A stretch of 62,770 bases of DNA, the filler included, from Octopus bimaculoides (lineage: Eukaryota), in NCBI RefSeq assembly GCF_001194135.2. It is 5 parts of 5 records of this genome, joined end to end, with 100 filler letters (N's around TTAATTAATTAA, not from the genome) between each part and the next. Parts side by side here need not be neighbours in the genome. Positions count along the whole stretch, not along the records: positions 1 to 27,546 come from NW_026297134.1; 4 more parts are not named here. One strand, written 5' to 3'. Under the pieces are notes generated by a model that was not told the origin of the DNA, ran no database searches, and saw only the letters and a program-made list of their open reading frames with translations. Position numbers and translations under genes: made by a program. Shown piece by piece: positions 538-21,509 of the stretch. Numbering within the stretch: the first letter of the stretch is position 1; every line of letters starts with the position of its first letter.

Positions 538-1876
538 TGAGGATGGGCTGAAAAGCTCATAGGCTGACTACGATGCAATGAGTGAACTTGACCAAATGTG
601 TTTTATTGTTTGGCATAGTCTCCCCTGCGGTCCATACACTTCTTACATCAGTATTGCAGCACTTGGATTTCCGTGGTATAGAAGCTCTCATCCTGACCCT
701 CAAAAAAGACCTCAACAGCAGATATGGCTTCATCATTGATCCGATACTGCTTCCCAACCAAGTGTTTCCTCATGTTGGGGAACAGAAAATAGTCAGATGG
801 TGCTAAATCAGGAGAATATGGAGGGTGATCAACCAGTTCAAAGCCACAGTCATGCACAGCAGCCATTGCAACCACAGACTTGCGTGCAGGAGCATTGTCC
901 CCGTGAAGCAGGACCCCCTTCATCAGTTTTCCAGGCTGTTTTCATTACATTTCGTAGCTTCCTCAGCAAGGTGGCATATAATATTCACCATTGGTAGTAT
1001 GGCCTTTCTGAATGGGGTCAATGAACACAATGCTGCTTGCATCCTAGAAGATGAAGGCCATCATCTTTGGCCTTCTTTGGTGGGGGGGCGAAGATGGGTG
1101 TTTCTACTGCATGGACTGCTGTTTGGTCTCTGGATCAAAGTCGTGAACTCAGCATTCATCTTGGATGAGGAAAACATACAAGAAAACCGACCGGATTTGC
1201 TTCAAAAAGTGCCAAGTTTGCCTGCGACATGACCAGCTTGGTGTGCTTTTGATCAGGCATCAAAAGTTGTGGCACCCACTGAGCTGAAACCTTCGACATG
1301 CTAGGTTCGNNNNNNNNNNGCATCAAAAGTTGTGGCACCCACTGAGCTGAAACCTTCGACATGCTAGGTTCGTTATGCAGAATGTTCTCAACTCATTCAC
1401 GGGAGATACCTACAGCATTAGTTATCTGATTAACATTTAAATGTCTGCCACTCATTACTGTGTGGTGAACATGGTCAACGTTTTCTTGGGTGGTGGCTGT
1501 AGCAGGACGTCCAAACCTTGGGTCATCTTCAAGACTTTCCCTACCTTTCTTGAATTCAGCTGCCCACATTTCCACAGTTGGTAAAACTGGAGCATCATCT
1601 CCTAATGTAGCAACTGTGTCAGCATGAATGTCTTTGGGGGCTAACCCCTTTTTCTGCAGATATCTGATAACACCACGGTGCCAAATTTTATCCATTTTCA
1701 CAAAATGTCTCTAGTACCACTTTTACAAGTCCTCAATTCTGATTCCAATGTGGGTTTATCTGGAAAGAAAAAAATGGAGTTAGCATCAGTAAAGGTTGAA
1801 TTTAATGCATTCCAAGTTTAATTACTGTATGATAACTCCTTCTTAGTCAGCCTATGATACTTTCAGCCCAGCCTTG
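538..1876 (-). mobile_element. Full-length decayed mariner (Tc1/mariner, D,D34D) DNA transposon, about 1.34 kb
   Basis: TIRs of about 31 bp: 538-568 (tgaggatgggctgaaaagctcataggctgac) versus the reverse complement of 1846-1876. TA dinucleotides flank both ends (536-537, 1877-1878). An interrupted transposase lies inside. Confidence 0.93.
603..1701 (-). pseudogene. Mariner transposase pseudogene (frameshifts and stops)
   Basis: ORF fragments give the N-terminal HTH (..RESLEDDPRFGRPAT), a WVP motif (KVSAQWVPQ), LLHGDNAP and HPPYSPDLAPSDYFLFP, ending ..KCMDRRGDYAKQ*. Confidence 0.92.
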
Positions 1877-2070
1877 TATGTCTATGTTAATGTGACACTT
1901 GTATACACACAAACCTGCTTGTATGTAATTGTTTACAGAAGAATTTACGATGTACTCTTGCTGGTCACTGTAGTGCCCCTTAATATTCTGTACTCTAAAC
2001 ATGTCCATAATGAAATATTTTATTATAACTGAATGTCATTGATGGGATGTGTTAATATTTTGTTCCACAG

Positions 2071-2213
2071 GTGTCGGTGGTGTCAAGAGAAAAAGGCTAC
2101 TGTCACACTCCAGCCATGTCAACATACTGTTATTTGTCAGAATTGCTGTTCTCAAATGACATTTAAGCAATGCCCCATATGTCAACAATACGTACTCAGC
2201 AAAAGTGGATTTG
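2071..2213 (+). CDS. Internal exon encoding a RING-HC (C3HC4, MIB/IAP-type) finger of an E3 ligase-death domain gene
   Basis: Acceptor ttgttccacAG at 2069-70 and donor GTaag at 2214. The 143 nt translate as CRWCQEKKATVTLQPCQHTVICQNCCSQMTFKQCPICQQYVLSKSGF, spacing C-x2-C-x11-C-x-H-x3-C-x2-C..C-x2-C. The exon ends in phase 1. Confidence 0.9.
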
Positions 2214-3177
2214 GTAAGAACATTCTTTAATGATCTGTCTGTTGTCTCATTAATTTTCTGGTATGGAATAACACACTTCATATTGTGGTAGAGACCCAGA
2301 TCTGCCATTATCTGGCATAAATGGGGTCTTTTCTTTGTAATAGTATATCTATCACTACATCCACTAAACATTGTCTTTATCTAATTAGAAGAGTGATCAC
2401 ACTTCAAAAGGATTGTGCTTTGCAACATATGACTAATGAATGATAATATAAGATAAATGGTAACTAAATGAAATATCACTAAATCTCCAATGTTCTATTT
2501 GTAAACATTTTACTTTCAATTGTGAGTGATTAGAGGTGATTAATGATTTATCAGTATCATGGAGAGCTGATAATTAAAGACAATGTTACTTACAAGAACA
2601 TCAGAGTCAGCTTTGGTAAAGTAGGAGATTCAAGGATAAAATCTGAACTGAGTGTTCAAGGAGCAAGTTTATAGAGTTTGACGGTTAAACCAATCAGCCT
2701 GGGTATCAGAAAAGAATGTTGTAATTGGGAAAGGATGTCAGGGATAGTTTCAACATATTTTACAAAGTTGAACTTCACAAATTCATCATGATTTATCATA
2801 CTGTGAAGATATCAAACAATTACAGTAGTCTAAGGTTTGATAGGAATTGTCATATTTTGTTGGTGGGTATATACACAGAATCTTTCAGTATAAGAATATT
2901 GAACAATAAATTACTTTCATTCAGTACTAAATCAGTATTGAACTGTGAACATGTGTTTAGATTTAAACAAAGTATTGGTGCTAGCATTCGATACAGAGAT
3001 AGAAACAAAACAGGAGTTCCCAGTGTGACTCAAATACACAAATCCCTGTTGATAAATATATACAACCTTGGCCAAATTATAGAGCAGGTATAATAAAATA
3101 GAGAATATGATTGAAACTCATTTACTTAATAATTGAAACCAGTCTAATAAACATTCTACAGTTGATCCCATCATTAA

Positions 3178-4318
3178 TTAGTATTTGATGTGTCCTCCTT
3201 TTGCTTTTATAACTGCTTTTATGCGTTTTTGCATACTTGAGACTAAGTTGGCACAAGTGGCTGGGTCAGTTTCCTGCCACTCTACATGAATTTTGGTTTC
3301 TAATTCGCTTTTTGAAGAACATTTTTGCACCCTCACTGTTCTACCTAAGGGTCACCACATGTTCAATAGGATTGAGGTCTGGAAACTAAGGAGGCCATTT
3401 CATCACCCTCATCCCTTTCTTTACACCAACCCATTGAAACTCTGGATGTGTGGCATGCAGAAATATTTTGTTGAATGATTATGCCATCTGGGGTGTTATC
3501 ATTGAAGATTTTTTGCTAAAGAAGGTTGATAAACTTGATCTAACATGTTGGTGTAAGTGTTGGCATCCATTCTGCCCTTACAAGTGAACAACATTCCAGA
3601 CCCTTAAGAAAACATGCAACCCCAAACAATTACACTTTCCAATCCAAATTTGACTGTTCAGACTGCACATCCAGGATGATAAACCTCCCCTACTCTATGG
3701 TGGACATAGACAGCTCCTGGGTTTTCAAAGATCTGAAGATAATCAAAAAAATTACTGATCATTTTTGGTGTCCAATACAAAATTTGTAAAAGTGTAAGAA
3801 TTTCAATTAATGCCTAGTAAAATGGTGGAAATGAATGTGGAGAACATATATCAAAGTTACTTTGATCAGACCAAACAACTTTAGCCCCATCATCAGTAGT
3901 TCAATCTTCATGCTCTTTTGCCCAACACAATTGCTTCTTCATGTTCCCCTCTGACAGTAACAGGATCTTTTTGGCCTTACGTCCTTTGAATCCAGCTTCT
4001 AATAACCTTCTTCTCAATGTGTGAATTGATATATCTTTGTTTGTTGCCATCCAAAACTCAGCAGCTACGTCAAAAGAGGTGTTTTTCCTATCCACCAGTG
4101 ATGTCCTCTTCAGCAACCTGTCTTCCCTTGTGGTTGTACATGTTTTGCAACCTCGTCCTTTACAATTTATGAAAGACTTTCTCTCATTGTACCTTTTGAT
4201 GGAAATCTTTTCTTGAGCATTTCAATTTTCTTGCAATTTCAACTTGAGAGAATCCTTCACTTGATAATGCAATGATTTGAGACATTTAAGCTTCAGGAAT
4301 CTATTTCTTTGGAGACAT
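3178..4318 (-). mobile_element. Decayed Tc1-like transposase
   Basis: Runs from an ATG at 4318 through an HTH segment (..ISIHTLRRRLLEAGFKGRKAKK..LCWAKEH) to the typical Tc1 C-terminus LVSSMQKRIKAVIKAKGGHIKY* (stop 3178-3180). Many stops; TIRs not resolved. Confidence 0.85.
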
Positions 4319-5354
4319 TTTTAACAAATATTAACGACTGATAAGTTATCAATAAGATATTCAATGAAAAAATAGGAAATAACATTAGTGTCACAAAATG
4401 AATGGCTGAAAATTGACCCAGCAATTTTCACCAACACTAATTAGATGTAATTTATAAAACATTGTAGAGGCATTTTCAATTAGTTGATCTCAATTATCAT
4501 TAGTGACAAAAGTGGTAGAGTAGTTGTGGTGGAGTTGGGGAGTGAGTACTGTTACATATATTCCTTGTAATGTTGTTTTTGTATTAATTACAACTTCAGA
4601 AAAACAGTTTGTGTCAGTCGAACCCTTGTACAGAGGTGTAAATTTTGTGTCCTCAAATTTGTTTGTAACTGGGTTTTCACCCCCATTGCAATGTAGCAGA
4701 TTCATAGAGGGGTCATTAAACGAGTGAGGAAACTTTGATTGATTTTCTAAAAGAAGATTGTGAGAGATATCCTAGATTCTTAAGAAGCAGTTCTTTTGTG
4801 CCTTTTCAGATATTTGCACTACAAATTATATGGATGAACAGTTAAATGTAGTTAATGTGTTTTTTTTATACAAGTGTAGAATGTTTGAGGACACCTGTTA
4901 TCATTTGTCTGTTCCACCTGTGTAGACATGTTGTTTCTTGTGCGGATATATACCCAGAATGTCTCTGGTTAGAATATATATTTTAGATATAAATTAAAAG
5001 TAATATAATATTAAATCTGTTTAAAGATATTGAAATTGAAATTACTTTTGTTAAATTGAGTATTGAACTCTGAACATGTTTACATTTAAACAAAGTATTG
5101 GTATTAACATAAAATATACAGATAGGAATAAAATGTGTTCTAGTGAGATTTGAACATGCAACTTCTTGTTCCTAACTATATGATTAACACTTGTTATAAT
5201 GTTTGCCATCCTTTTCGACCTTTTATACTCACACTTGTTAGTTTTTTAGATGAGATTAATGCTAAAAGAAGCATTGTTTTCTGATTCTTTCACCTTTTGA
5301 TTTTACTTTTGAGTTGATTAGTTTTAATTAGAACATGAATCCTGATCATTGCTC

Positions 5355-6100
5355 CAAGGTGGTATCAGAAAGTTCACGGACTAGTTCTGTAGCATGCCAA
5401 CAGATAGCAGCACATGGTTGCATGTACATTGAGAGTTAACAGTGACTTTCATGAGTCAGTGGGCTGGGTGACACCACTGCGTTTACTTTGCAAGTTGTGA
5501 AATTTGTGCTTTTGTGGTCATGTGTAGGCTGTAGTCTATGATTTTCTCATGGGCAAGACCAAAGAGCCAATGTGGAATTTTGGGTTAAACTTGAGAAGTC
5601 TGCGTCAGAAACATTGAGCATGCTTCAGCAAGATTATGGCAATGGCACAATGAGTTGTATACAATGTTTTGAGTGGCACGCACTTAAAAAAGAGAAGAAT
5701 GCCCCTGGAAGACCTGCCACATGCATCGTCCCCATANNNNNNNNNNGTGGAGCATGAAAAATTGGATTCTTCACCAAGCTCTCCTCATTCATGAAAGTCT
5801 CACAACAAACAACATGGTACCACTTCTGCATCTGCCCCATTTGCCATCTCTTCCCCAAGATGAAAACGTAGTTGAAATGTCACTGTTTTAACCATTGTCA
5901 AGTTCAACAGCAAATTGCTAAAGGTCCTCGCTTCACAGAAAATGGCTTTCAGGACACATTCCAAAAGTGGCATGAATGCTGGGATTGGTGTATTGCTACG
6001 AAAAGTGACCATTTTAAAGGAAATGATGCTAAAATTTGAATAAATAAATAATGTTTTTATTGAACATAATATTTCTGGAAACCTTTTGATAGCACTTTGT
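5355..6100 (+). mobile_element. Internally deleted mariner element
   Basis: Imperfect TIRs (caaggtggtatcagaaagttcacgga versus the reverse complement of the ~6072-6100 end). N-terminal HTH fragment (NVEFWVKLEKSASETLSML..APGRPAT) plus C-terminal remnants (..FQDTFQKWHECWDWCIATKSDHF). Contains a 10-N gap. Confidence 0.75.
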
Positions 6101-7139
6101 GTTTGACGAGAGTAAAGGATTTATTATTAGTATTTGGCAATGGATCTGGTAACATTTTTCTTTCATGGAACTACAGTAATATCAACTGTGCTGAAACACA
6201 ATTATATTCATTGTAACACAGGTCACATGCTTTATTAATTAGATTAATTAGAAGCTATATAGATATCTAGTATTGCAGTGTCAGGCAATGTGCTACTGTA
6301 CTTTCTATATAATCTATTAACATAATAATTAATCTGCTGTCATTCAGAAACACTATTACAGTTGTATGTCTGAAATTTGAACTTACTTTGTCATAGCATC
6401 ATCTTGTACCCTCACCTAACATTTTACACCTTGTTTCCCTGTATGTAAATATATTGTTTTGCTTGGGTGCTGGACCACATCCCTACAAACCGGAATTATT
6501 GTTCCCCATCGTCCAGTAATGTTCAGATGTTATTGTGTTTTGGCTTCATTCCATATGAAAAAGTATGAAGTGAAACATTTCTGTATATTTATATGACACT
6601 AATTTTATATATTATATAAAGTTGGTTAGTGATGTTTTAATTGGTTGGTCTCAATTATCATAAGTGACATGGTGTGATATGGCAATGGAGAGGGTTACGT
6701 GTTCCTTTGTTGCTCTTATAGTAACAATGTCATCAAAATGATAGTTTCTGTCAGCTCTGTAGAGATTTAATGATCATGTTTCCAAATTTTCTAGTAACTG
6801 GGTCTTTGTCCTATAGCTTCCTGTTTGACCCGTGTATACCTAATCATCACTCATCTGGAAAGGAACCTACTTTATTAAAGAGGATGAATGATGTTGAAAT
6901 ATCTTCAAATATTTCCTGAATCAGAAGACATTCTGGTGAACTGTGAAGTCGGCAGTTAGAATTAAAGATTACCAGCAACACCCTCTAACAAAAAGAGCAG
7001 GTGTATGTTTATCCTACTCAAAGTGGCCTGTCGTGTGTCTGAGGACCAACTTGGTTTAACATTGAATTGAGCAGAAAAGAGGTTGAAAGTTGGTTAGTGG
7101 CATCTAGAGGTGAGAGGACGTCATAGGTCATAGGTCGAG

Positions 7140-7835
7140 CACAGATATGAGAAAGAAAACACAAAACTAAGAGAAAAAGAGTGTCATCAAGTGATAATTA
7201 AATGAGATAATTGCAGAATTGTTAGATTATGTAGGAGATATAAATAGGGAGAAGAGATTTAGGAAGGTTAGTCTATTTTGTTGTGGCTCTAAATATTGAG
7301 CTATTAGATTGAGACATTTTAAAAAGTGTTGGCCAAAAGAATAGTGGTCACTAAATGACAATTGATGAGCAGAATGTCTGACAATAACAAAATATAGATC
7401 ATTAATAAAGATTATGAAATTTTACTATAAAATGTAAAACTTGGAAATATTCATTTTAGAGACTAAAGATTGAACAGGAAACTCAGAGGACATCACAGCA
7501 AGTTGGTGAGTATAAAATAACAATACCTAATAGATTTCTGTAAATTTTACCTTCAGCTGAGCTTTATTAGTTGAATGACTAAGAACAGGTTCCATTCCTA
7601 ATTTCCAATTGAAAGATTAGCTGTATAATAATTCTATTAAACATACTGATATTACTGAAGTTTCACAAAATATCCAACATGGTTAGCATGGTTTGTAAAA
7701 TGGATAATTCAGAAGACAAATAGAGTTGATATTGTAGATTGGAACAGAGAACTAAAATAGGCTTTTGTTGTTTAGTGTTAAAAAGTTGAGTTAATGACAA
7801 CGTTTTTGTTTGTTTATATTTGGTTGTTATTGTTG
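7140..7835 (+). repeat. Intron-exon-intron cassette copy 1 (about 700 bp)
   Basis: Clear homology to 12100-12803 and 8270-8750, e.g. tcaagtgataattaaatgagataattgca, atagtggtcac, aaaatataga, ccattcc..caattga, attctatt. Confidence 0.9.
7460..7505 (+). pseudogene. Duplicated exon copy 1 (frame-incompatible pseudo-exon or poison exon)
   Basis: Flanked by tttAG and GTgagt like the exons at 8421 and 12427, with homologous intron flanks. It is 46 nt (RLKIEQETQRTSQQV) and lacks the 2 nt needed for a phase-1 start. Confidence 0.55.
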
Positions 7836-8269
7836 TTGNNNNNNNNNNNNNNNNNNNNNNNNNNNNNNNNNNNNNNNNNNNNNNNNNNNNNNNNNNNNNN
7901 NNNNNNNNNNNNNNNNNNNNNNNNNNNNNNNNNNNNNNNNNNNNNNNNNNNNNNNNNNNNNNNNNNNNNNNNNNNNNNNNNNNNNNNNNNNNNNNNNNNN
8001 NNNNNNNNNNNNNNNNNNNNNNNNNNNNNNNNNNNNNNNNNNNNNNNNNNNNNNNNNNNNNNNNNNNNNNNNNNNNNNNNNNNNNNNNNNNNNNNNNNNN
8101 NNNNNNNNNNNNNNNNNNNNNNNNNNNNNNNNNNNNNNNNNNNNNNNNNNNNNNNNNNNNNNNNNNNNNNNNNNNNNNNNNNNNNNNNNNNNNNNNNNNN
8201 NNNNNNNNNNNNNNNNNNNNNNNNNNNNNNNNNNNNNNNNNNNNNNNNNNNNNNNNNNNNCTTTAACTG

Positions 8270-8750
8270 TAGAAAGTATAAAAATATTAGCCAAAACCAT
8301 AGTGGTCACCAGTTGACCATTGATAATAGGAATGTCTCACAATAATAAAATATAGACTATTAAGAAAGATAAAAAAAAGATTTAACTCTATATTGTAAAA
8401 CTTTTAAATATTTATTTCAGAGAGATTAAATTTGGAGGAAAACCGCTCCCATAGCACATCAAAGAAGTTGGCAGTTGAGCAACAGCAAGTTGGTGAGTAC
8501 AGAATAAGTCCCAAAGTGATTTCAAATTAGTTTTACTTGAGGAGCGTATTTTGTTTGTCTGAGAAGGACTGAGAACAAGTCCCATTCCTAATTTTCAATT
8601 GACAAATCAACTGTATAATAATTCTATTGGTCCACCAAGGTTAGAACAGACTATAGTTAATAATGTCTTTTGGAATAGAGAACTAAAATATGTTATTTGG
8701 TTAGGGGTGAACAAGTGCTTTAATGACAAGGTCTTTGTTTTACATATATA
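8270..8750 (+). repeat. Intron-exon-intron cassette copy 2 (5' part hidden in gap)
   Basis: Shares atagtggtcac, aataataaaatataga, gtaaaactt..aaatatttatttcag, ccattcctaattt.caattga and ctgtataataattctatt with copies 1 and 3. Confidence 0.88.
8421..8492 (+). CDS. 72-nt phase1-1 linker exon of the RING-death domain gene (duplicated cassette copy 2)
   Basis: tttatttcAG|...caagttg|GTgagt. Open frame RLNLEENRSHSTSKKLAVEQQQV is symmetric and in frame with both neighbours. Actual inclusion in the mRNA is unproven. Confidence 0.6.
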
Positions 8751-10439
8751 CTGAGTTTACTAATAAGTTGTTGTTTCAGCAGGAGTCTCTCATAATCTGG
8801 CAGACTTAAGATGAAATGCATTCCAAGTGTCAACATCCTGTCTTTTTGTCACTGATAGGAAATCTATCATTACATCCATTAAACACATTGTATTTTATCG
8901 AAGTAGAAGATACTGGCTTGCTACTGAGATAACCATTGTTTTTTTTTCTTTCTCTTTTTGATAGATACTAGCTGCAACATACAATAAATGACATCGTCCT
9001 CACCCTTTATCATCTGATTTCCATGCTCATGTGGAATGGATGGGTGGTCACTGTCCAAGTCAGTCCTTATTAACAGTTACTGCCCACCTTCATAGGTTGA
9101 GGAACACGTCCCACTAAAACATTCCAGCTTTTCTATGATGGTATGCTCTTCCTAACACCAACCACTTTATAAAGGATCCTTGGTGCATTCTATTGTGGCA
9201 CAAGTACAAGAAAGATTGTTACGTATTATTCAACAAAATTAAACGTTCCTCTCTAACTTATGCAAAGAAATATCAGACATGTTGAAAGAAGAAAGGAGAT
9301 AAATGAATTGGAGAGGAGCTCCTTAAGAGACCTTACGAGGTTACTAGGAAGCTGTTTGCAGATGCTAAGAGCGGCAGGATGAACTGTAATAAATGAAATC
9401 CAGCTTAAGTGTGGTTAGTGGTCAGTAGGGAGAGCTAGAAAAGCTTTTTTAACCATCCCTACTGACCACAATATATATATTTATTTAAAAAGATTATTTT
9501 TTATTTACTAATTAGAAATTTCACTAGTTACAATCTGCTGTATTTTTGGAGCTATTAATCCTGTTCATTCCTGCAGAGGCANNNNNNNNNNNNNNNNNNN
9601 NNNNNNNNNNNNNNNNNNNNNNNNNNNNNNNNNNNNNNNNNNNNNNNNNNNNNNNNNNNNNNNNNNNNNNNNNNNNNNNNNNNNNNNNNNNNNNNNNNNN
9701 NNNNNNNNNNNNNNNNNNNNNNNNNNNNNNNNNNNNNNNNNNNNNNNNNNNNNNNNNNNNNNNNNNNNNNNNNNNNNNNNNNNNNNNNNNNNNNNNNNNN
9801 NNNNNNNNNNNNNNNNNNNNNNNNNNNNNNNNNNNNNNNNNNNNNNNNNNNNNNNNNNNNNNNNNNNNNNNNNNNNNNNNNNNNNNNNNNNNNNNNNNNN
9901 NNNNNNNNNNNNNNNNNNNNNNNNNNNNNNNNNNNNNNNNNNNNNNNNNNNNNNNNNNNNNNNNNNNNNNNNNNNNNNNNNNNNNNNNNNNNNNNNNNNN
10001 NNNNNNNNNNNNNNNNNNNNNNNNNNNNNNNNNNNNNNNNNNNNNNNNNNNNNNNNNNNNNNNNNNNNNNNNNNNNNNNNNNNNNNNNNNNNNNNNNNNN
10101 NNNNNNNNNNNNNNNNNNNNNNNNNNNNNNNNNNNNNNNNNNNNNNNNNNNNNNNNNNNNNNNNNNNNNNNNNNNNNNNNNNNNNNNNNNNNNNNNNNNN
10201 NNNNNNNNNNNNNNNNNNNNNNNNNNNNNNNNNNNNNNNNNNNNNNNNNNNNNNNNNNNNTAATTGAAGAGTTCCTAATTAACATTCATTTTTAATCACT
10301 TTTCAAAACCCTCATTACTACACTATTTTGCTGTCCAATTGAATCATCTCTTCCAATCATATCAAGTAAAACCTTCAGCTTTTCTGTATATTTTAGTGAG
10401 ACTTCAGTTAGCTTTTAGTGATACTGATTGTTTGGTGTT

Positions 10440-10680
10440 TTAGAACATGACCTTTAAGCCAAGTATTGAGAAGAAGACTCATCAAGCCAAGTAAAATCGC
10501 AGTCATGGCAGATACTGGTGGCATGTAAAAACACCCATTGCACTCTGGGAATGGTTGGCATTAGGAAAGGCATCCAGCCATAGGAATCATGCGAAATCAG
10601 ACTGGAGTCTGGTGCATCCTTCCATTCAAACCGTCCAACCCATCCCAGTATGAACAACAGACGTTAAGTGATGATGATGA
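10440..10680 (+). mobile_element. RTE-LINE 3' tail or derived non-autonomous repeat
   Basis: tggttggcattaggaaaggcatccag..gtccaacccat..gacgttaagtgatgatgatga, the same tail as 17150-17310 and 33800-33962. Confidence 0.8.
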
Positions 10681-10829
10681 ACTGGAGGGGCATATACAAG
10701 AGATCTACACTGATCCTAAGTGAGATAATCCATTCCCACTCATGGACAGTCTGAAATGCCCAACAAAACTATGAATGAAATCTCAACTTGGTGGTTTCAA
10801 ACAGAAACAATTATATAACTGAGTGAAGA

Positions 10830-11880
10830 AGGCAAACGCAAAGAGGTGCCCCAGGAGGTGATGGTGTATCATAGAAAGTGTACAGGTATTAGTGTACACA
10901 ATTATGTTATGAAGCTGTACTTAAAGAGTTGTGGCATAAAGATGAAATGGTTGATGACTAGTAGAAGGCAGAAAAAAATTACTTCCCAAAGAAAGCTGAA
11001 ACAGAACTGATTGACCAGTTCAGACCATTTTCAATCTTGAATGTAGATGGCAAAATTTACAAGGGTGTAGTTGCCAAGAGATCAGCTACACATCTATAAA
11101 ATAATGACTATGAGACCGAGAGTGTCCAAGATGCTGGAATTTCCAGAACCACTGGATGCGTAGAACATGATCTTTCAATCTGCAAGACACAAAGAAGAAT
11201 AAAAGGGATTTGAATGTTGTATGACCTGATCTGGTTGATGCTTATGGTTCTGTACCACACAAATTAGTGATGGAACCAATGAACTTCTTTTATATATGAG
11301 AGCAGATTAAAGATCTGACTAGAAGCTGCTTTAATAATTTCAAAATGTGGTTCCTGACAGAAAATTTTACAACAGACTGACATCATTTTGAAATTGGAAT
11401 TGCTGTAGGTTGCACAATATCAATCATTTAGTTTGTGCTTGTTGTGGAGATGTTACTTAGATCAGCAGATTGATCAGAAGAAATGGCTCGAGTGAAATCA
11501 CCCAAGAAGGAATCCAAAGAATGATATAACAATACTAACAAGAGACGAAAAGGGTATGCAAATAGTTCTAGATGAACTGGATTAACTAATTCTTTCGTCA
11601 AGAATGGGGTTTAAACAAAATAATTAATGCAGTCATTTGTCAAAAGGTCAGCTGAAGCAAGTGGAGTTCAAAATAGCAAATGAAACGATGCCAAGGGTTA
11701 AAGAGAAACCTATAAAATGTTTTGGACGATGGTATGCTACCTCGTTGTGCAGTAAGGGTAGAGGCGTAGAGGTCATGGCACAAACTGAAGATGGGTTAAA
11801 GGCAATAGCTAAGCCAACATTTCCTGGCAAATAAAAGACTTGATGCTTCCAGTTTGATCTATATCCCTGCCTTGCTTATA
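10830..11880 (+). mobile_element. Decayed RT fragment of an R2-superclade (HERO-like) non-LTR retrotransposon
   Basis: Degenerate motifs FRPFSILNVDGKIY, VQDAGI..GCVEH, DLNVV..DL.DAYGSVPHKLV, LEIGIAVGCTIS, and the post-RT segment MPRVKEKPIKCFGRWY..TEDGLKAI..FPGK. Confidence 0.7.
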
Positions 11881-12099
11881 AAATTCTTGAGTATCGGTTT
11901 TTATGCAACATTTCAGATTTTTTTTTACTGCCATAATGTATGGATGAACAATTATATCTAGTTAATAAGATTTTGTGAAAGCATACTGTGTTTTTGGATA
12001 CCTGATATGTTTTGCTCCCCCTCTCTAGAATTAATCATTGCCCACCCGGAAAGAAATCTGCTTCATTAAGGAGCCTTCTAATATCTCAAACACATGTGG

Positions 12100-12803
12100 C
12101 ACATATATAAGAAACAAAAAGTACAAAACTAAAAGAAAAACAGTGTTATCAAGTGATAATTAAATGAGATAATTGCAACATCGTTAGATTATTTAAGGTG
12201 TCTTAATAGAGAAAGGAAATTTAGGAAAGTTAGTCTGTTTTGTTGCAGACCTAAGTATTGAGCTATTACCTGGTCCCACTGGATAAAGCATAAGAATATT
12301 GACCAAACACATAGTGGTCACCTGATGACCAGCAATGATGATAGGTATGTCCCACTATAATAAAATATAGATTCTTAATGAAGAATTTTTACTCTCAGGT
12401 ATAAAACTTGCAAATATTTATTTCAGAAACTCCAAAGTTAGAGAAGTTACTCCAAGCTGTCGCACAACTGTTAGGAAGCAAGTGGAAGCAAGTTGGTGAG
12501 TATAAAATAACAGTACTTAATTGATTTTAATAGGTGTCAGCTTTTGTTTGTCAGCATGACTGAGAGAAGATCCCATTCCAACTTTGCAATTGAAAGGCTA
12601 GCTGTAAAGTGATTCTATTAAATGTATTGGTATTACTGAAACTTCATAAAATAACCACCGAGATTAGCAGGGTTAGTAAAATGGATAAATTAGAGGACAC
12701 AATAGATTTAATATTGTCTTTTGAGAGAGCAAATTAAAATATGTCATTTTAACTAAAAATTGGTTAGTTAATGACCAATTTGTTTTGTTTGTTTTACATT
12801 TTT
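12100..12803 (+). repeat. Intron-exon-intron cassette copy 3
   Basis: Homologous along its length to 7140-7835. Confidence 0.9.
12427..12495 (+). CDS. 69-nt exon encoding the start of the death domain (cassette copy 3)
   Basis: tttatttcAG|...caagttg|GTgagt. Encodes TPKLEKLLQAVAQLLGSKWKQV, which joins the last exon to give the death-domain motif LGSKWKQVGRHLG. Confidence 0.88.
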
Positions 12804-13449
12804 NNNNNNNNNNNNNNNNNNNNNNNNNNNNNNNNNNNNNNNNNNNNNNNNNNNNNNNNNNNNNNNNNNNNNNNNNNNNNNNNNNNNNNNNNNNNNNNNN
12901 NNNNNNNNNNNNNNNNNNNNNNNNNNNNNNNNNNNNNNNNNNNNNNNNNNNNNNNNNNNNNNNNNNNNNNNNNNNNNNNNNNNNNNNNNNNNNNNNNNNN
13001 NNNNNNNNNNNNNNNNNNNNNNNNNNNNNNNNNNNNNNNNNNNNNNNNNNNNNNNNNNNNNNNNNNNNNNNNNNNNNNNNNNNNNNNNNNNNNNNNNNNN
13101 NNNNNNNNNNNNNNNNNNNNNNNNNNNNNNNNNNNNNNNNNNNNNNNNNNNNNNNNNNNNNNNNNNNNNNNNNNNNNNNNNNNNNNNNNNNNNNNNNNNN
13201 NNNNNNNNNNNNNNNNNNNNNNNNNNNNNNNNNNNNNNNNNNNNNNNNNNNNNNNNNNNNNNNNNNNNNNNNNNNNNNNNNNNNNNNNNNNNNNNNNNNN
13301 NNNNNNNNNNNNNNNNNNNNNNNNNNNNNNNNNNNNNNNNNNNNNNNNNNNNNNNNNNNNNNNNNNNNNNNNNNNNNNNNNNNNNNNNNNNNNNNNNNNN
13401 NNNNNNNNNNNNNNNNNNNNNNNNNNNNNNNNNNNNNNNNNNNNNNNNN

Positions 13450-13910
13450 CCACAGACACAGCAGAATGGGTCTGCCAGATGCTTACAACCTCTTGATGCC
13501 ATCTGTGATGAATGCTGTTCTTGGATAGTTAGAAACAAACTGAACTGTTGATCTTATGATCCCTTTATTTACACTGGCATCTATGTTGCCAAAACGTTCT
13601 AGAAATTCTTCGAAATTTTAGTAACTCCTTGATGATAGTTCTAGAAAACTCTGCTTCAGTAACCCAGCACTGAATCTGTCTGGAAATAGGTTTCAAAACA
13701 TTGATGTCCAGGTGACAAAAGCAACGTTTGAAGGGAACAGATGTCCTTTCCTTTGATTTCTTGATGGAATTGAATAAGAAATGACACTTACTGATCAAGG
13801 ACAACAAAATATTTAAAGTTTGTTATAAAGTCTTATTGATTTCTCTCTAAATCATGTCCTTGAACCATTGAAAGAGATCCTTATAATGATTCATGAACCC
13901 GTGTTGTCTA
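13450..13910 (-). mobile_element. 5' end of a Chapaev3-like (CMC superfamily) DNA transposon; remainder in the gap
   Basis: The minus strand from ATG 13502 reads MASRGCKHLADPFCCVCG, matching from memory the N-terminal zinc-binding start of Chapaev3 transposases (MASRGCKH.AD.FCYVCG). The upper boundary is approximate. Confidence 0.55.
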
Positions 13911-13932
13911 GCAAACTGTGTTATATTTTGTA

Positions 13933-15237
13933 TTGGGTCATCCCATAAATAATGCAGTTTTTTCAATTGTATGAACAGAAAGTCAGAGGGGGACGGGATA
14001 AACTACCTGCATCAACTTGCTATAAAGGCAGGTAGTAATTTTACAATTTACTTATTCTTAGTGCAAGTTCTGAAGTGTGCAGTTCAATTTTAATAGTTAC
14101 TTTTTCAAAGCTATAATGGAAGTTACAAAGGAGAATATTTTGCTTTATGAATTCAGTAAAGGCAACAATGCAACAGAAAGCATGAGGAATATTAATGCAG
14201 TGTCTTGGGATCAGAAACTAAGCGTAAGCCAGTGTCAATGGTGGTTTCATAAATTCCGAGCCAGAAACTACAGCCTAGAAGATGAGCCTCGTCCTGGAAG
14301 ATCTGTAGAGCTCAACGAGGACGTCCTGCAAACGCTGGTGGAACACAATCCCATTGTAACTAGCAGAGAAGCTTGGATTTGGTCATTCAACCATTCATTG
14401 ATACTTGCATGGTATTGGAAAAATCATCAAATTGGGTCAATGGATCACGCACAGAGTGAATGTGTGCTCTCCTCTGCTGTCATGTCTCATGAATGAACCT
14501 CTTTTGAACCGAATAGTGACTGGTGACAAGAAACGGGTTCTCTATAAATACGTCAAGCACCAAAGACAGTGGGTAGGGAGAGGGGAAACACTGGCACTCC
14601 AGCCTAAAGAAGGTCCTCAGACATGTAAGGTGTTGTTATCTGTTTGGTGGGATATGAAAGATTTAGTCCACTTTGAACTTTTAAACCCTAACNNNNNNNN
14701 NNTGTTTGGTGGGATATGAAAGATTTAGTCCACTTTGAACTTTTAAACCCTAACCAAACGATAACAAAGGAGATCTATTGGAAGCAGCTTGAGTGGCTTA
14801 AGTCAGTGCTAGAAGAGAAACGAACATATTTGGTTCCAAGATAATAAGTGCTTTTCCATCAGGATAATGCTCGGACACATACAGTAAGGATGACATTCCA
14901 AAGGCTGGAGCAGTTTGAATGGGAAACGATGCCCACCCACCATATTCACCAGCCATTGCCCCATCTAATTGTCATTTATTCTGCAGTCTTCAAACTCGTT
15001 CGGACAGAGAAAATATGTTATCAGTGGATGAGGTCAGAATAGAAGTGGAGGGGGTATTTTTCATCATGGACAAGTGAATTTTGGAAGAGAGGCCTTGCAA
15101 GTCTGCCGGATAGATGGAAGAGCATTGTAGAAAATGAATGAAGTATATTAAAGATTTAAAAAGAAGTTTGTTTCTCTTAAGTTTGTAAAATAAAAGAAGT
15201 GTAAACAAACTGCATTATTTATGGGATAATAACCCAA
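13933..15237 (+). mobile_element. Full-length decayed mariner element (about 1.3 kb)
   Basis: TIRs ttgggtcatcccataaataatgcagttt and aaactgcattatttatgggataataacccaa with TA on both sides (13931-32, 15238-39). Transposase remnants MEVTKE..YEFSKGNNATE, EPRPGR, IVTGDKKRVLY, FHQDNARTH, from about 14116 to 15140. Confidence 0.93.
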
Positions 15238-15489
15238 TACATTGTGTCTTTGAGATCATTCTGGTATCTCGTCTATTTGTATTTTGGTCCAGATATGCCT
15301 AATAGGACCAGTATTGTTTGATAGTTCAAACCATATCTTCTAGATATTTCTAACTCTTGATGTTTTAATTATCAATTAGTCAAAAGGGGAGAAACATCAC
15401 AGACAACTATTTCAGGCATTGACCATGGAATGTTATCAAACGGACAAAATGGGATTTCTTTAAAGGGTCTCTGGGGTAATGATACTAAA

Positions 15490-17310
15490 TAGGATGTATA
15501 GGGCTCTCCCGATCCCTTATCTGGTGATCAATGAGGAAACTAGGGATAGAAGAATGTTTAGTGAAAGCTGTGTGAGCCATGTACAGAGACGCTGTCAGTA
15601 AGGTGAGGGTCGGCAACGAGTNNNNNNNNNNGTACAGAGACGCTGTCAGTAAGGTGAGGGTCGGCAACGAGTACAGTGAAGAATTCCGGTTAGAGGTAGG
15701 GGTCCACCAAGGTTCAGTCCTCAGCCCTAACCCTATTTATCATAGTCTTCCAGGCTATAACAGAGGAATGCCCCTGGGAGCTCCTCTATGCTGATGACCT
15801 TGCACTAATCGCTGAGTCACTATCAGCACTAGAGGAGAAGCTTCAGGTGTGGAAGCAAGGACTAGAATCGAAGGGCTTTAGAGTCAACCTAGCAAAAATC
15901 AAAGTCCTAATAAGTAGGAAGTCAGACAAACTACAAATCCCTTCAGTTAGATGGGTCTGCTCAATCTGTAGAAAAGGCGTAGGTAGAAACTCTATAAGAT
16001 GTACCCAGTGTAAGCAATGGACACATAAGAGGTGCAGCAATACAAAAGGAAAGTTAACTAGGAAGTTAGTTTTTGTATGTGGCAGATGTTCAGGAGCAAT
16101 AAACACTGAAAATGTGCAGAAAACAACTTCTGCCACATTCCAGGGAGAAAAACTAGATGTAGTTGATAGCTTCCGCTATGTAGGTAACCAAGTTAGTAGT
16201 GGGGAGGGTATGATGAAATTGTAGCTGCTAGAATAAGAATAGCCTGGGCAAAATTCAGAGAGCTCTTACCTGTGTTGGTGACAAAGGGCCTCTCACTCAG
16301 AGTAAAAGGCAAACTGTACGACGCATGAGGACATGCGTGACTGCTGAGGACATGCGTAAGCTCACGAGGAATGATGCCAGTATGCTCCGATGGATGTGCA
16401 AACTCGACAGAGTGTAAGTACCTTGAGAGTAAAGTTGAACCTTAGAAGCATCAGTTGTAGTGTGCAAGAGAGACGATTGTGCTGGTATGGTCATGTGGCG
16501 AGAATGGATGAGGATAGCTGTGTGAAAAAGTGCCAAGCCCTAGCGGTTGAGGGAACCCGTGGAAGAGGTAGACCCAGTAAGACCTGGGATGAGGTGGTGA
16601 AGCACGACCTTCGAACATTAGGCCTCACTGAGGCAATGACTTGTGACCGAGACCTTTGGAAATATGCTGTGCGTGAGAAGACCCGGCAAGCCAAGTGAGA
16701 CCTTAATCCGAGGCCTCTGCCAGGAGTATAGCCAGCACACTTATGCGTACCTTTCCTTCATTGGACACTAAACTCTTCTTGCAAAGACCTGTTGAGGCAA
16801 GTGAAATCGAAATCGAACTAAATTTGATGACTGGCATTCATGCCAACGTCTCCTTCATTGGACACTAAACTCGTCTTGCGAAGACCTGTTGGGGCAAGTG
16901 AAAGCGAAGTCATGACGACACCTGTACCAGTGGAGCGCTAAGAGCACCATCTGAGCGTGATCGTTACCAGAACCGTCTTCCTGGCACTTGTGCCGGCACC
17001 ATGTGAAAAGACATTCGAGCGAGATCGTTGCCAGTGCCGCTGGACTGGCTTCTGTGCAGGTGACACGTAAGATATACCTTTTTGAGCGTGGTCGTTGCCA
17101 GTACCGCCTGACTGGCCTCCGTGCCGGTGGCCCGTAAAAGCATCCACTACAGTCTCAGAGTGGTTGGTATTAGGAAGGGCATCCAGCCGTAGAAACTCTT
17201 ACAAATCAGATTGGAGCCTGGTGTAGCCTTCTGGTTCACCAGTTCTCAATCAAATCGTCCAACCCATGCTAGCATGGAAAGCGGACATTAAGCGATAGTG
17301 ATGACGACAA
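15490..17310 (+). mobile_element. 5'-truncated RTE-clade LINE (RT C-terminal half, PHD finger, 3' UTR), in the last intron of the RING-DD gene
   Basis: VGVHQGSVLSP, LLYADDL, GFRVNLAKIKV, C4HC3 finger, ERRLCWYGHVARM..GTRGRGRPSKTW, stop at 16698, then a GC-rich 3' UTR ending in a degenerate (gat)n tail. Confidence 0.92.
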
Positions 17311-17339
17311 CGATTCCAGAGATCTGGGGAATCTCTCCA

Positions 17340-17700
17340 GCTTGAATCGGTTCCTCTCCACCTCTCTGGTACTATGGACATGTGTTGCAGGAACAAATTA
17401 CAAGACAAATTCTTCAAGCCTAATCAATGGAGCAGGGGTCCTAAGGGTAGATCAAAAGCTTAATGGTTGGGTGATAGCCATAATCTTAGTTGTTTCTGTT
17501 TGGGAATCCAACATAAAAGTCTAATGATGGCTGCTTCTGATAGGACCCTATGGAAGAGGTTCCTGAAGACTCTATCTTTACAATCCTCGCAAGAATATTG
17601 AGCAGAGACACTGTTGGTGGTCTATATTGATTCTTTAGGTTCTCATACACAAACACTTCTCCTAACATCTGTTTACCATGAATTTTCAATTGATTTTCTT
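17340..17700 (-). mobile_element. Highly decayed LINE RT fragment (possibly L1/Tx1-type)
   Basis: YRPPTVSLLNILARIVK resembles the YRPISLLN..KI motif of LINE RT domain 0/1. Confidence 0.4.
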
Positions 17701-17925
17701 TCAAATCTTCACCATCTTCATCCTGTATTTCCACCTCTTTGTTATTATTTAATTAACATTCTCAGAAACAGAGAACAATGCCTTTTATTTTTTATGTTTC
17801 TTCACTATTTCTCATTCCTTTATTGACTTAGTTTATTTGTTATATTTATGACAACCTACAGTACACATCCTTTATGTAATCGTTAATGATTTTGAAATTA
17901 TTTCTTATTGTTTTATGTTTTGCAG

Positions 17926-18131
17926 GTAGGCATTTAGGAATCAAAAATGTCCAACTGGAAACAATCAGGTTAGACAATCCTCTTAACACTAACGAACATA
18001 GCTTCCAGATGCTGTACAAATGGTACACAAGTTGTGATCAAGAGAAACGAACACTGAAAACACTGAGAGAAGCCCTCGAAGCAGCTGAGTGCTTTGAGGC
18101 ACTTCAATGTCTACCATCAGAAGAAAAGTGA
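17926..18131 (+). CDS. Terminal coding exon encoding the rest of the death domain
   Basis: Polypyrimidine tract and ttttgcAG at 17924-25. Encodes GRHLGIKNVQLETIRLDNPLNTNEHSFQMLYKWYTSCDQEKRTLKTLREALEAAECFEALQCLPSEEK*, with the death-domain pattern (..ML..W....T...L..AL). Confidence 0.9.
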
Positions 18132-18387
18132 ACTTGTGTGTAAATGTTGTAATTGTTTATACTCAAAAGTTAACCTTGATTAAACAGAGACTCATGATCA
18201 AATGCCTTCCAGCCAGGACCCTCCTGTCTTTATGTGGGGAACCCAGAATCACATTGTCCAATGTGTTCTTCTTTAAGGTGATAATTGAACTGAGGACGAT
18301 TTGGCTACTAATTCTAGCAAATCTATCAACCACATAAGAGATTCCCTTCCTGAATTGGTTCCTTACTTCTTAGAAATTAACTTTTGA

Positions 18388-18805
18388 AATAAAGATAATC
18401 TTTGAAATGTTCATTTGTTGTTGTTGTTTTTGCTGTGTATCTAAGCTCCTCCCCAAACGCCTTCCATTGTTGTAGAGACCGTTTTCATATCCTTTCATAT
18501 ATCGATAGTTATCTACCTTCATTTATAGCTGAAAGGGAAATGTCTGGTATATAAATATTGATATCTTTTCTCTTTATATATATCATATAGGGATAGTATT
18601 TCTATGTAATATATGATGTACCTATGGGCATTTCACTTTGTCCTGTTGTGGGTTTTTTAAGACAGCCCTTCCCCTAATGTGGGGGCGTTTGAATAAAACA
18701 CAGGGTTGGGAGTGCAATTAAGAGTTATCTCTATTTTATATTCTAGCTTTAGAATCATTGTTAATTACTAATTACTGCAGTTTAGTTTTTCCAGCAAAAA
18801 ATAAA
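18388..18805 (+). terminator. Candidate polyadenylation signals for the RING-death domain gene
   Basis: AATAAA at 18388, 18692 and 18800, downstream of the stop codon. The sequence is AT-rich, so chance occurrence is likely for some of these. Confidence 0.35.
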
Positions 18806-19184
18806 ACTTTATGATTGCATATATAAAAAATAAATCCATAAATTTCAAATTTATTAATAGAGGTGTTGATAAATCCTTTCCTAATAAAATGATGTCATAT
18901 TTGTGATTTTAATTTCAATGTGATTGTGGGAAAGACAGTGACTCTCACCTTCCAAATAATTTGTTATTAGATTCGTTCATGACAAGAGAGAACAAAACTG
19001 GTTGAGCTGAAATTAAATACAAAAGTATTTCAGTTACATCAAATTCATTTCAGAAATTGATCAACAATTACTATGAAAATTTATTAGAATTCAAACAAAT
19101 TATTTGGTATCAAAGTTTGTATAAAATTATTTTAAGTAAATTGCTAACACATCTTACTGATTTTTAGCTCCAAAATGTGGGAGT

Positions 19185-20020
19185 CAACAACTTCCGGCGG
19201 TGTATATTTCGCGTGTCACTGTTATTTATGACATATTACACTTTGGTCAGTGGAGGCACAATGACCTAGTGGTTAGGGCAGTGGCTTCGCGGTCATAGAA
19301 AAGCGGTTTCGATTCCCAAACCGGGCGTTGTGAGTGTTTATTGAGCGAAAACACCTGCAACTCCACGAGGCTCCGGCAGGGGATGGATGGCAACCCTGCT
19401 GTACTCTTTCACCACAACTTTCTCTCACTCTTACTTCCTGTTTCTGTTGTGCCTGTAATTCAAAGGGTCAGCCTTGTCACACTGTGTCACGTTGAATATC
19501 CCCCGAGAACTACGTTAAGGGTACACGTGTCTGTGGTGTGCTCAGCCACTTGCACGTTGATTTCACGAGCAGGCTGTACCGTTGATCGGATCAACTGGAA
19601 CCCTCGGCGGAGTGCTAACAATAACAAACCTTTGGCCGGCAGATTAAAAAAATAATTGTCACTGTTATTTATGACATATTTCATCTCAGTTACGTTTGTA
19701 TGAATAAACGATTGTACTTGAAGCATATTTACTTCATGTCACCACCACAATCGTTCGTGCATTTCTACTACTTTTAGTCTTTTTTTTCATGCTTTTCAGC
19801 TATTTTCGGAAAGACATTTTTGCCCCCCACTCCCCTTCTAATTTCTTCATTTTTTCACATTTTTCCGTAACTCTAACACGAAAATCCCAACCCTAACTCT
19901 AAAACCCTAACCCTGATCCTAGAACCCTAACCCTAAAACCTGAAAGCTAAAACCAGTACAAACGCACGAACGATGTCATAAATAACTGACAAACGAAATA
20001 TACACCGCAAGAAGTTGTTG
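19185..20020. mobile_element. Non-autonomous TIR (foldback/MITE-like) element with internal telomere-like repeats
   Basis: 19185-19233 (caacaacttccggcggtgtatatttcgcgtgtcactgttatttatgaca) is the near reverse complement of 19974-20020. Degenerate (ccctaa)n at about 19887-19936. Confidence 0.7.
19238..19656 (+). mobile_element. tRNA-derived SINE flanked by a 24-bp direct repeat
   Basis: Pol III A-box (tgacctagtgg) and B-box (ggtttcgattccc) near 19262-19317. Identical tgtcactgttatttatgacatatt at 19214-19237 and 19657-19680. Confidence 0.8.
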
Positions 20021-20645: not shown

Positions 20646-21509
20646 CGTAGATTCCTAATGAAGTAAATCGCTGCTTCTGTTCTCTTCTACTTCTCTACTA
20701 GAAACGTTTACTTTGGAATTTACTTCTATTGAGAAAAACAAAATCGTGTGAATTGTTGTTTTTAACGAAAGTTTTCTTATGACGGCTTCTCTTTTCTGCG
20801 TATACACGTACACACAAACACACACACACACATACACAAAGACGCATACACACAACATACACTTACAAGCGCACACTCACACAACCACACACACACACAC
20901 ACATACACATACACCCACACACTTGCACTCATACACTTACACACAAGCAAACAAATCCCCTCAACTGAGAAGAGTCAACTGTTGTCTTTTGCGAGCGAGA
21001 AACCTCAAATCTTGTTCGCTGCGAGTCAAAGGAGTCAAAAGGCCTCGACTTTTTGCAGATTTTCTCTTCGCAGTTATTCCCCTTCGTATGTATTAACATT
21101 ACGAGTTTCTCAGTTCTCTCCCTTTATTATTTTTTTGGTTTCTTTTTTAAACAAAATGTCAGTTCCTTAATTTCTTCTGCAAATTTTAATGTCTTATAAC
21201 TTGAGTTCTGTAGAAGAAAACAATTTCGCTGTAAAAACCATCCTTTTTGCAAATCATTATACTTTTGAAATTTCTCTCTACTTAAATGTCATTTTTATAA
21301 TGTCTTTCTTATATTTAAGAACCACATTTCATGGTGTAATGATGAATATCTCGGAATCCCGTTCAGCTTATTTCTCCAGTTTTAGAATTTAATGATAAAG
21401 TCCCCATCAAAAATTCGTTTCGTGTATCTATCCTGATGAATATGTTAAGAATAAATCCCTGTAAAGGGAAGAATTTTTAAAAATCGTTCTATAAATTCGC
21501 CTCCAAAAT

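Follow-up and report, generated by a model that had tools for sequence, protein, structure and literature searches.

Cellular inhibitors of apoptosis (cIAPs) act on death-receptor complexes by ubiquitylating RIPK1, and in the TNFR, Toll/IMD and PIDDosome systems ubiquitin ligases enter through adaptors, such as TRAF2 for cIAP. Human MIB2 is reported to ubiquitylate RIPK1 and cFLIP in TNF signalling (PMC7815719). Among oyster IAPs, those of the "BIRC11" type have the domain order BIR-DD-RING, where DD is a death domain (PMC8917759). The present analysis concerns a locus in Octopus bimaculoides that joins a RING finger to a C-terminal death domain at positions 2071-18131 of a 62,770-nucleotide (nt) stretch of DNA (the window), made of five parts of RefSeq assembly GCF_001194135.2 joined end to end. 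The locus lies in the part from NW_026297134.1 (positions 1 to 27,546), an unplaced scaffold with a GC content of 37.6% and eleven runs of N.

The locus is likely to be the 3′ part of an Octopus ankyrin-RING-linker-death gene with a proposed role in RING/death signalling, a linker built from tandem cassettes and a 46-nt exon that would have to be skipped for the fusion to be made. That the protein acts as a ligase and is recruited by way of its death domain is inferred. The architecture is already present in databases under automatic names and is apparently undescribed in the literature searched.

Exons and domains of the locus

Coordinates are on the + strand of the part from NW_026297134.1. 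Two sequences serve for comparison throughout: the gap-free O. sinensis contig VCDQ01005287.1 (L004), which carries the orthologue, and the O. bimaculoides paralogue LOC106867311 (L001). The exons of the locus are as follows.

2071-2213, +, RING exon; ttccacag/GTGTCG ... GATTTG/gtaaga; acceptor phase 2, donor phase 1
8421-8492, +, linker cassette exon; tatttcag/AGAGAT ... AAGTTG/gtgagt; 72 nt; phase 1/1; encodes (E)RLNLEENRSHSTSKKLAVEQQQV
12427-12495, +, first death-domain exon (helix 1); tatttcag/AAACTC ... AAGTTG/gtgagt; 69 nt; phase 1/1; encodes (E)TPKLEKLLQAVAQLLGSKWKQV(G)
17926-18131, +, last exon, with the remaining death domain and the stop; ttttgcag/GTAGGC; TGA at 18129-18131

A preliminary description, made from the sequence of this stretch, had proposed four exons that splice in frame (phases 1/1/1) to give a RING, a death domain and a stop, and the splice sites, the open frame and Pfam all bear this out. 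The four exons have canonical AG/GT sites, and phase 1 holds at all three junctions. The spliced frame, open from the first RING cysteine through to the stop, yields a product of 162 residues; the three-exon splice without 8421-8492 is likewise in frame. In Pfam the spliced product matches Death (1e-10) and zf-C3HC4_3 (2.7e-9), both over the curated cut-offs. Exon boundaries and splice-site contexts are the same in O. bimaculoides and O. sinensis. The RING exon is 95% identical at the nt level to its orthologue (L004 12425-12567), with the same boundaries. The linker exon corresponds to L004 14665-14736 (ESLNLEENRAHSTSKKVAVKQQQV; 93% nt identity), which is found in the O. sinensis RefSeq isoforms P0004, P0005 and P0014. 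The first death-domain exon is 95.7% identical to L001 14641-14709, and its L004 counterpart (18512-18583) is longer by one codon; the last exon is 91% identical to L001 17668-17873 and 86% to L004 22047-22252. A separate linker exon at 12249-12344 was considered and rejected, as its frames meet stops or yield the wrong phase.

The RING exon encodes CRWCQEKKATVTLQPCQHTVICQNCCSQMTFKQCPICQQYVLSKSGF, with eight zinc ligands in C3HC4 order (C1, C4, C16, H18, C22, C25, C34 and C37 in the numbering of the exon product), none of which varies in 17 paralogues. The proline of the CP.C motif is present too, as is a hydrophobic residue located between C1 and C2. As a RING-HC of the C3HC4_3 family (PF13920) it scores 37.1-37.6 bits against a cut-off of 27, and the nearest solved RINGs by sequence are those of cIAP1/cIAP2 (~4e-7), followed by CGRRF1, XIAP and MYLIP; the earlier assignment to the IAP/MIB type agrees with both the family match and the cIAP1/2 neighbours.

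Evidence that the death domain is complete, as had been claimed, came from Pfam coverage, structure prediction and fold comparison. The Death match (PF00531) scores 42 bits against a cut-off of 22.6 and covers profile positions 3-79 of 86. In the AlphaFold model, the predicted local distance difference test (pLDDT) is 84-96 across the death domain, as means of 10-residue blocks, and below 50 in the linker; DSSP assigns five helical stretches within residues 73-154 of the predicted model. Each of the 35 best Foldseek matches is a true death domain, with target template-modelling scores (TM-scores) of up to 0.82, and CARD or PYD folds enter only from E ~1.8 up. The best fold match in the PDB is ankyrin-G (root-mean-square deviation 1.4 Å), followed by FADD, RAIDD and RIPK1. 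By sequence, the nearest solved death domains are those of RIPK1 (1.2e-10), PIDD (1.1e-8) and ankyrin-3 (7.9e-8), with ankyrin-2 also among them.

The 5′ part of the gene lies outside the window, as had been supposed: tblastn and collinearity with L004 place no ankyrin exons in it. A tblastn search of 1-2070 with the N-terminus of the orthologue found no upstream exons, and this stretch is mostly a Mos1-type transposon remnant.

The O. sinensis orthologue is the gene for XP_036355658/XP_029656683 ("MIB2-like"; P0014/P0160), in which two ankyrin exons (L004 8972-9190 and 11254-11433) and the RING exon are followed by five cassettes of the VCPKSE.KAVQAVVESV type, the ESLNLEENRAHSTSKKVAVKQQQV exon and two death-domain exons. 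The N-terminal ankyrin repeats are carried by P0160. The exon plan recurs in three O. bimaculoides paralogues that are placed on chromosomes; in loci L001 to L004 it runs from a RING exon ending ...SGF in phase 1 through optional phase-1/1 cassettes to a first death exon of ~25 residues and a final exon that completes the death domain. Identity between the window product and four close family members, P0004 and P0001 among them, is 62-79%. In the family the linker between RING and death domain is variable and of low complexity. Pfam assigns the long members between 2 and 9 or more ankyrin repeats, a single RING and a single Death, and nothing else; none of ten family proteins (seven of them longer than 380 residues) has a MIB/HERC2, ZZ, BIR, ZU5 or UPA match. 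The RefSeq names (MIB2-like, MIB1-like, ankyrin-3-like, PSMD10-like) therefore describe parts of these proteins and not orthology, ankyrin-3-like referring just to the ankyrin repeats and the death domain, and in practice MIB2-like, ankyrin-3-like and PSMD10-like are misleading as names for the family. The suggestion of an expanded family of MIB-like paralogues thus stands in part. The family is expanded, with ankyrin repeats and a RING, but it has a single RING, and the MIB/HERC2 and ZZ domains for which a Pfam check of the upstream region had been proposed are absent from the full-length members, in which ankyrin repeats were found.

There are around ten O. bimaculoides gene models in the family, and more in O. 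sinensis. A profile running from the RING to the end of the protein was compared with 1.84 billion representatives, giving 1710 matches at E up to 0.001, of which the best 150 were examined. Among these 150, the RING-then-Death order occurs in 25 new clusters, all from O. bimaculoides, O. sinensis or O. vulgaris, and no RING-HC motif is present in any non-Octopus protein; the non-Octopus matches are death-domain-only proteins, such as a starfish protein with multiple death domains. Ten proteins from two homologue searches also have RING then Death and come from the same three species, and a word-indexed search with 17 paralogues returned 66 matches, all from Octopus. The RING-death fusion is real and recurrent, and the claim that it is lineage-specific is in keeping with these results, since the order was seen solely in the three Octopus species in the best 150 of the 1710 matches and in the second search. 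"Octopus-only" here means only seen there; absence elsewhere is unproven, and database coverage of other cephalopods is uncertain. In the literature searched, neither an ankyrin-RING-death nor a RING-death architecture is described, the nearest being the oyster BIR-DD-RING proteins.

Two family members stand apart. P0011 (O. sinensis LOC115231989) reads CRWCQEK and then the +1 frame of the RING exon (RLLSHSIHVNI...), and represents a frameshifted pseudogene unless the assembly is in error. P0022 (O. vulgaris CAI9744465) has the order RING-Death-LRR-Death, where LRR is a leucine-rich repeat; it looks like a fusion of neighbouring genes and hints that ligase and LRR genes adjoin.

Tandem cassettes, assembly and competing readings

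Intron 1 contains a further exon that the preliminary description had missed, and this exon, the linker exon and the first death-domain exon each lie in one of three tandemly duplicated units.

7460-7505, +, degenerate cassette exon; 46 nt; good AG/GT sites; not a multiple of three
7134-7838, +, cassette unit 1; exon 7460-7505 with intronic flanks; first of three tandem duplicates
8261-8800, +, cassette unit 2; exon 8421-8492 with flanks; 5′ end truncated by gap 7839-8260
12100-12803, +, cassette unit 3; first death-domain exon with flanks

When the three units are aligned, their intronic flanks are 68-78% identical and the exon bodies only 49-61%. The splice contexts AAATATT.ATTT.AG/ and /GTGAGTA occur in all three, which have also kept a common motif, E.PK.E.K..Q. 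Unit 3 holds the first death-domain exon, and the linker cassettes are therefore duplicates of that exon. The "short linker" of the preliminary description does exist as an in-frame exon, but it has to be reinterpreted as a copy that arose when the first death-domain exon was duplicated in tandem. The cassette linker is a clear case of exon duplication that makes spacer length selectable by splicing and supplies homology for recombination among paralogues.

In O. sinensis, L004 13394-14370 is a tandem array of 5.9 copies of a 166-bp unit (94% matches); every unit consists of a 51-nt phase-1/1 exon and a 115-nt intron. The cassettes are used in varying number (0 to 6) in O. sinensis gene models, with up to 22 isoforms per gene. 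RING-only O. sinensis isoforms end ...GEYKITVxN, which is the translation of an unspliced cassette donor, and are without a death domain; matching text for donor read-through follows the window exons, as GEYRISPKVISN and GEYKITVLN, each before a stop. Gap 7839-8260 is located where L004 has the array of 51-nt cassette exons and may conceal more in-frame linker exons. In O. sinensis isoform X1, the last death-domain helix is replaced by DQMPSSQDPP..., coded just past the stop (L004 22180-22400, window 18060-18290). The alternative last exon has no GT-AG intron ends in either O. sinensis or O. bimaculoides, and isoform X1 may for this reason be an annotation artefact.

The orthologue of the 46-nt exon is an in-frame 51-nt cassette, VCPKSEEEAAQAVVEPV (~L004 13408-13458), so the O. 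bimaculoides copy has undergone a net loss of 5 nt. Spliced after the RING exon, the 46-nt exon gives the frame ...SGFETKD and a stop. For a fusion protein to be made at the locus, the 46-nt cassette must, to judge from the reading frame, be skipped. The NCBI model of the locus, LOC106870258 (P0002), includes this exon as RLKIEQETQRTSQQV and reads the RING exon (2163-2213) in another frame, as NAPYVNNTYSAKVDL; it loses the RING and is annotated Death-only because inclusion of the 46-nt exon shifts the frame. P0002 thus appears to misread the RING exon of the locus. No codons for its first two residues (MD) occur at the position to which they align, which suggests that a mini-exon was invented upstream.

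Several observations weigh against the locus being the 3′ part of a functional RING-death gene. The 5′ exons, and hence the start codon, are off this scaffold, and the only public model has the 46-nt exon in and the RING out of frame. Coding exons are conserved just slightly above the flanking introns. The overall ratio of non-synonymous to synonymous substitution rates (dN/dS) against the orthologue is 0.56, indicating weak constraint, and the RING exon has 6 non-synonymous changes and 1 synonymous, with dN/dS practically undefined. In active RINGs the last cysteine is usually followed by Arg as the linchpin residue; this residue is Arg in the orthologue (CPICRQ), Gln in the window (CPICQQ), and R, Q, K, G, L, H or P among the paralogues. 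IAP-type RINGs dimerise through a C-terminal tail, and the RING here is internal and not C-terminal. AlphaFold models it at a pLDDT of ~57-61, from a shallow alignment and with no zinc. For the remaining parts of the product, dN/dS is ~1 in the linker against the orthologue, and 0.47 against the orthologue and 0.40 against L001 in the death domain, with counts throughout below the size needed for per-exon significance; the sole coding indel against the orthologue is of 3 nt (one codon). The family is fast-evolving, and selection on this copy is only weakly demonstrable.

Some of these observations suit an account in which no fusion is made. The 46-nt cassette would be spliced in, the stop would fall four codons past the RING, and an ankyrin-RING protein would result that ends near its RING like a canonical IAP or MIB, leaving the death exons as 3′ untranslated region, as a tail that triggers nonsense-mediated decay or as a decaying remnant. 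The 46-nt exon shares its donor (GTGAGTATAAAATAAC) with its sister exons and has a usable TAG acceptor, the NCBI model takes it in, the O. sinensis exon is in frame and the O. bimaculoides copy is shorter by 5 nt, constraint is weak with Gln at the linchpin, and RING-only isoforms are known in the family. However, nothing disrupts the three downstream coding exons along their 115 codons, their splice sites are conserved, and dN/dS in the death domain is 0.40-0.47. Skipping is expected given that cassette inclusion varies in the sister-species models, and the NCBI model is weak evidence on exon usage because its out-of-frame start is invented and the 5′ exons are off the scaffold. We regard loss of the fusion as unlikely. 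A different account accepts the fusion and takes the RING of the whole family to be a degenerate, non-catalytic fold, the proteins being death-domain adaptors or decoys without ubiquitin transfer, in which an ankyrin scaffold and a death domain block or bridge death-domain assemblies. The variable linchpin, the internal position and the low pLDDT of the RING would fit this, as would paralogues with damaged RINGs (in P0001 the stretch between ligand pairs is six residues short, and P0011 has a frameshift). Against it, the eight ligands are invariant in 17 paralogues, the CP.C proline is retained in most, and Pfam RING scores are over the cut-off in most members, a pattern that argues for selection on a folded, zinc-binding RING; degeneration of the RING across the family is accordingly judged improbable.

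The RING and death exons might also belong to separate genes, or have been joined by a scaffolding error. Six gaps separate the exons, and the Death-only annotation of the public model would be consistent with such a break. All six gaps are intronic, though, and no exon is in contact with one. The window and the gap-free orthologous contig align in eight blocks of 82-92% identity that are collinear from the RING exon past the stop codon, and a scaffolding error was rejected on these grounds. Chromosome-placed paralogues keep the same exon order, both domains occur in one protein in the ten proteins from the homologue searches and the 25 further clusters, and the flanks overlap at two of the three 10-N gaps that lie within the finding. 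Separate genes or a misassembly are thus very improbable. The large gaps are of 422-679 N; L004 bridges gaps 9582-10260 and 12804-13449 collinearly, with ~463 and ~526 nt in their place, and the second is bridged by L001 too. The 10-N gaps at 1310-1319, 14693-14702 and 15622-15631 have exact duplicated flanks of 53, 52 and 41 nt, respectively, and are taken for this reason as artefacts over continuous sequence, that is, as unmerged overlapping contig ends that leave one spurious duplicate per gap. The first of them is outside the RING-death finding. The remaining 10-N gap, 5737-5746, is within a window-specific transposon insertion in intron 1.

Paralogue L001 is 88-94% identical to the window in the death-domain half and only 68% across the RING exon region (window 11165-19187 against L001 13368-18897, and window 1961-2662 against L001 9886-10565). 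Its RING resembles that of another subfamily and has six residues missing. The possibility that the window and L001 are two haplotypes of one locus was rejected, with the 3′ half 91-94% identical and the RING region only 68%. The pattern is indicative of gene conversion or recombination among paralogues, with a breakpoint near window 11165.

Transposons and other sequence in the scaffold

Transposon insertions and remnants account for much of introns 1 and 3.

2296-5153, -, insertion in intron 1, absent from the O. sinensis orthologue; collinearity break at window 2295/5154 against L004 12649/12648
5594-7133, +, second window-specific insertion in intron 1; window 5593/7134 to L004 13079/13079; mariner-like by eye; holds gap 5737-5746
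14077-15077, +, Mos1/mariner remnant in intron 3; Pfam HTH_48 6.8e-13, Transposase_1 8.6e-20; aligned with L004 19415-21386; holds gap 14693-14702
15502-17314, +, window-specific insertion in intron 3; reverse-transcriptase fragment and PHD; RVT_1 1.5e-6, PHD 5.3e-6; collinearity break; holds gap 15622-15631

The first insertion has transposase-like open reading frames at 3178-3336 and 3901-4116 on the - strand and is Tc1-like by eye only; the left-hand frame of the second has no Pfam match. Remnants fill the introns and the 3′ flank, at 648-1701 (-), 3178-4116 (-), 5542-6040 (+), 14077-15077 (+), 15700-16700 (+) and 22720-23481 (-), and only that at 14077-15077 is common to O. sinensis. The reverse-transcriptase/PHD fragment has a second copy, inverted, downstream. 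Pfam matched nothing in the open frames of 116-176 residues (MDKFRKDLIAFFQRIGLRITID..., MIVQHNNKIITKTHNADS...) at 26177-27470 (+), which may belong to an unclassified retroelement. In six-frame translation, 20655-21000 alternates Cys/Val on the - strand and Thr/His on the + strand, the pattern that a long microsatellite of the CA/TG type would produce, as judged from the translations alone.

Proposed function and comparison with known systems

If the product acts as its domains suggest, its death domain would dock it onto oligomeric death-domain platforms by homotypic contacts, its RING would recruit a ubiquitin-charged conjugating enzyme (E2~ubiquitin) and modify components of the platform, and the ankyrin repeats would pick out or retain the substrate. 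The spacing of RING and death domain would depend on splicing, which could also eliminate the death domain entirely. Such a protein would resemble cIAP1/2 or MIB2 acting on RIPK1-containing complexes, but with the recruitment module inside the ligase. The mechanism is plausible because the death domain is RIPK1-like, the RING is cIAP-like, and MIB2 and cIAPs act on RIPK1 complexes.

Other O. bimaculoides proteins have related death domains. LOC106882527 (P0184/P0052) is an adhesion-type G-protein-coupled receptor (GPCR) with many LRRs, a GPS motif, 7tm_2 and a cytoplasmic death domain at its end that is 46% identical to that of the window (E 3e-21), which makes it a candidate receptor partner of the ankyrin-RING-death family. 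P0060 (XP_052833014, "RIPK1 isoform X2") has 300 residues, only Death by Pfam and no kinase, and its death domain is 48% identical to that of the window. A private Octopus death-domain network, with LRR adhesion-GPCR receptors, a kinase-less "RIPK1-like" adaptor and dozens of ankyrin-RING-death ligases, has been considered and remains a doubtful proposition; all three parts have closely related death domains (46-48% identity to the window's). In such a network, alternative use of the tandem cassettes would tune how long the linker of the ligases is and whether they have a death domain. If real, it would be a cephalopod-specific pathway of innate immunity or cell death in which polymerisation of death domains brings in an E3 ligase directly. 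Lineage-specific expansions of TRADD-N, an adaptor domain of apoptosis and immunity, have been described as few in cephalopods (PMC8195603); for death domains, the ten or so O. bimaculoides models and the greater number in O. sinensis would qualify that picture.

The known systems each have some of these features. ANKDD1A and ANKDD1B have ankyrin repeats and a C-terminal death domain, with no RING between the two modules, and are not among the sequence matches examined. RIPK1, PIDD and ankyrin-1/2/3 give the best sequence or fold matches to the death domain of the window, but their death domains sit on a kinase, on LRR/ZU5 or on ZU5-UPA, and none on a RING. MIB1 and MIB2, the source of the RefSeq name, are like the Octopus family in having ankyrin repeats followed by a C3HC4_3 RING; they differ in their MIB/HERC2 and ZZ domains, in having two or three RINGs with one terminal, and in having no death domain, whereas the single RING of the Octopus family is internal. 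Closest in combining a death-fold domain and a C3HC4_3 RING in one polypeptide are cIAP1/cIAP2 (BIRC2/BIRC3) and the oyster BIR-DD-RING proteins. IAPs, however, are defined by BIR domains, and the Octopus family is without them. The death-fold domain of IAPs is a CARD or a generic death-fold assignment, whereas that of the window is Pfam Death proper. The order is also reversed: IAPs have the death fold or CARD before a C-terminal RING, and the Octopus family has Death after the RING. A ligase with its own death domain would shorten the adaptor-recruitment step through which ubiquitin ligases enter the TNFR, Toll/IMD and PIDDosome systems.

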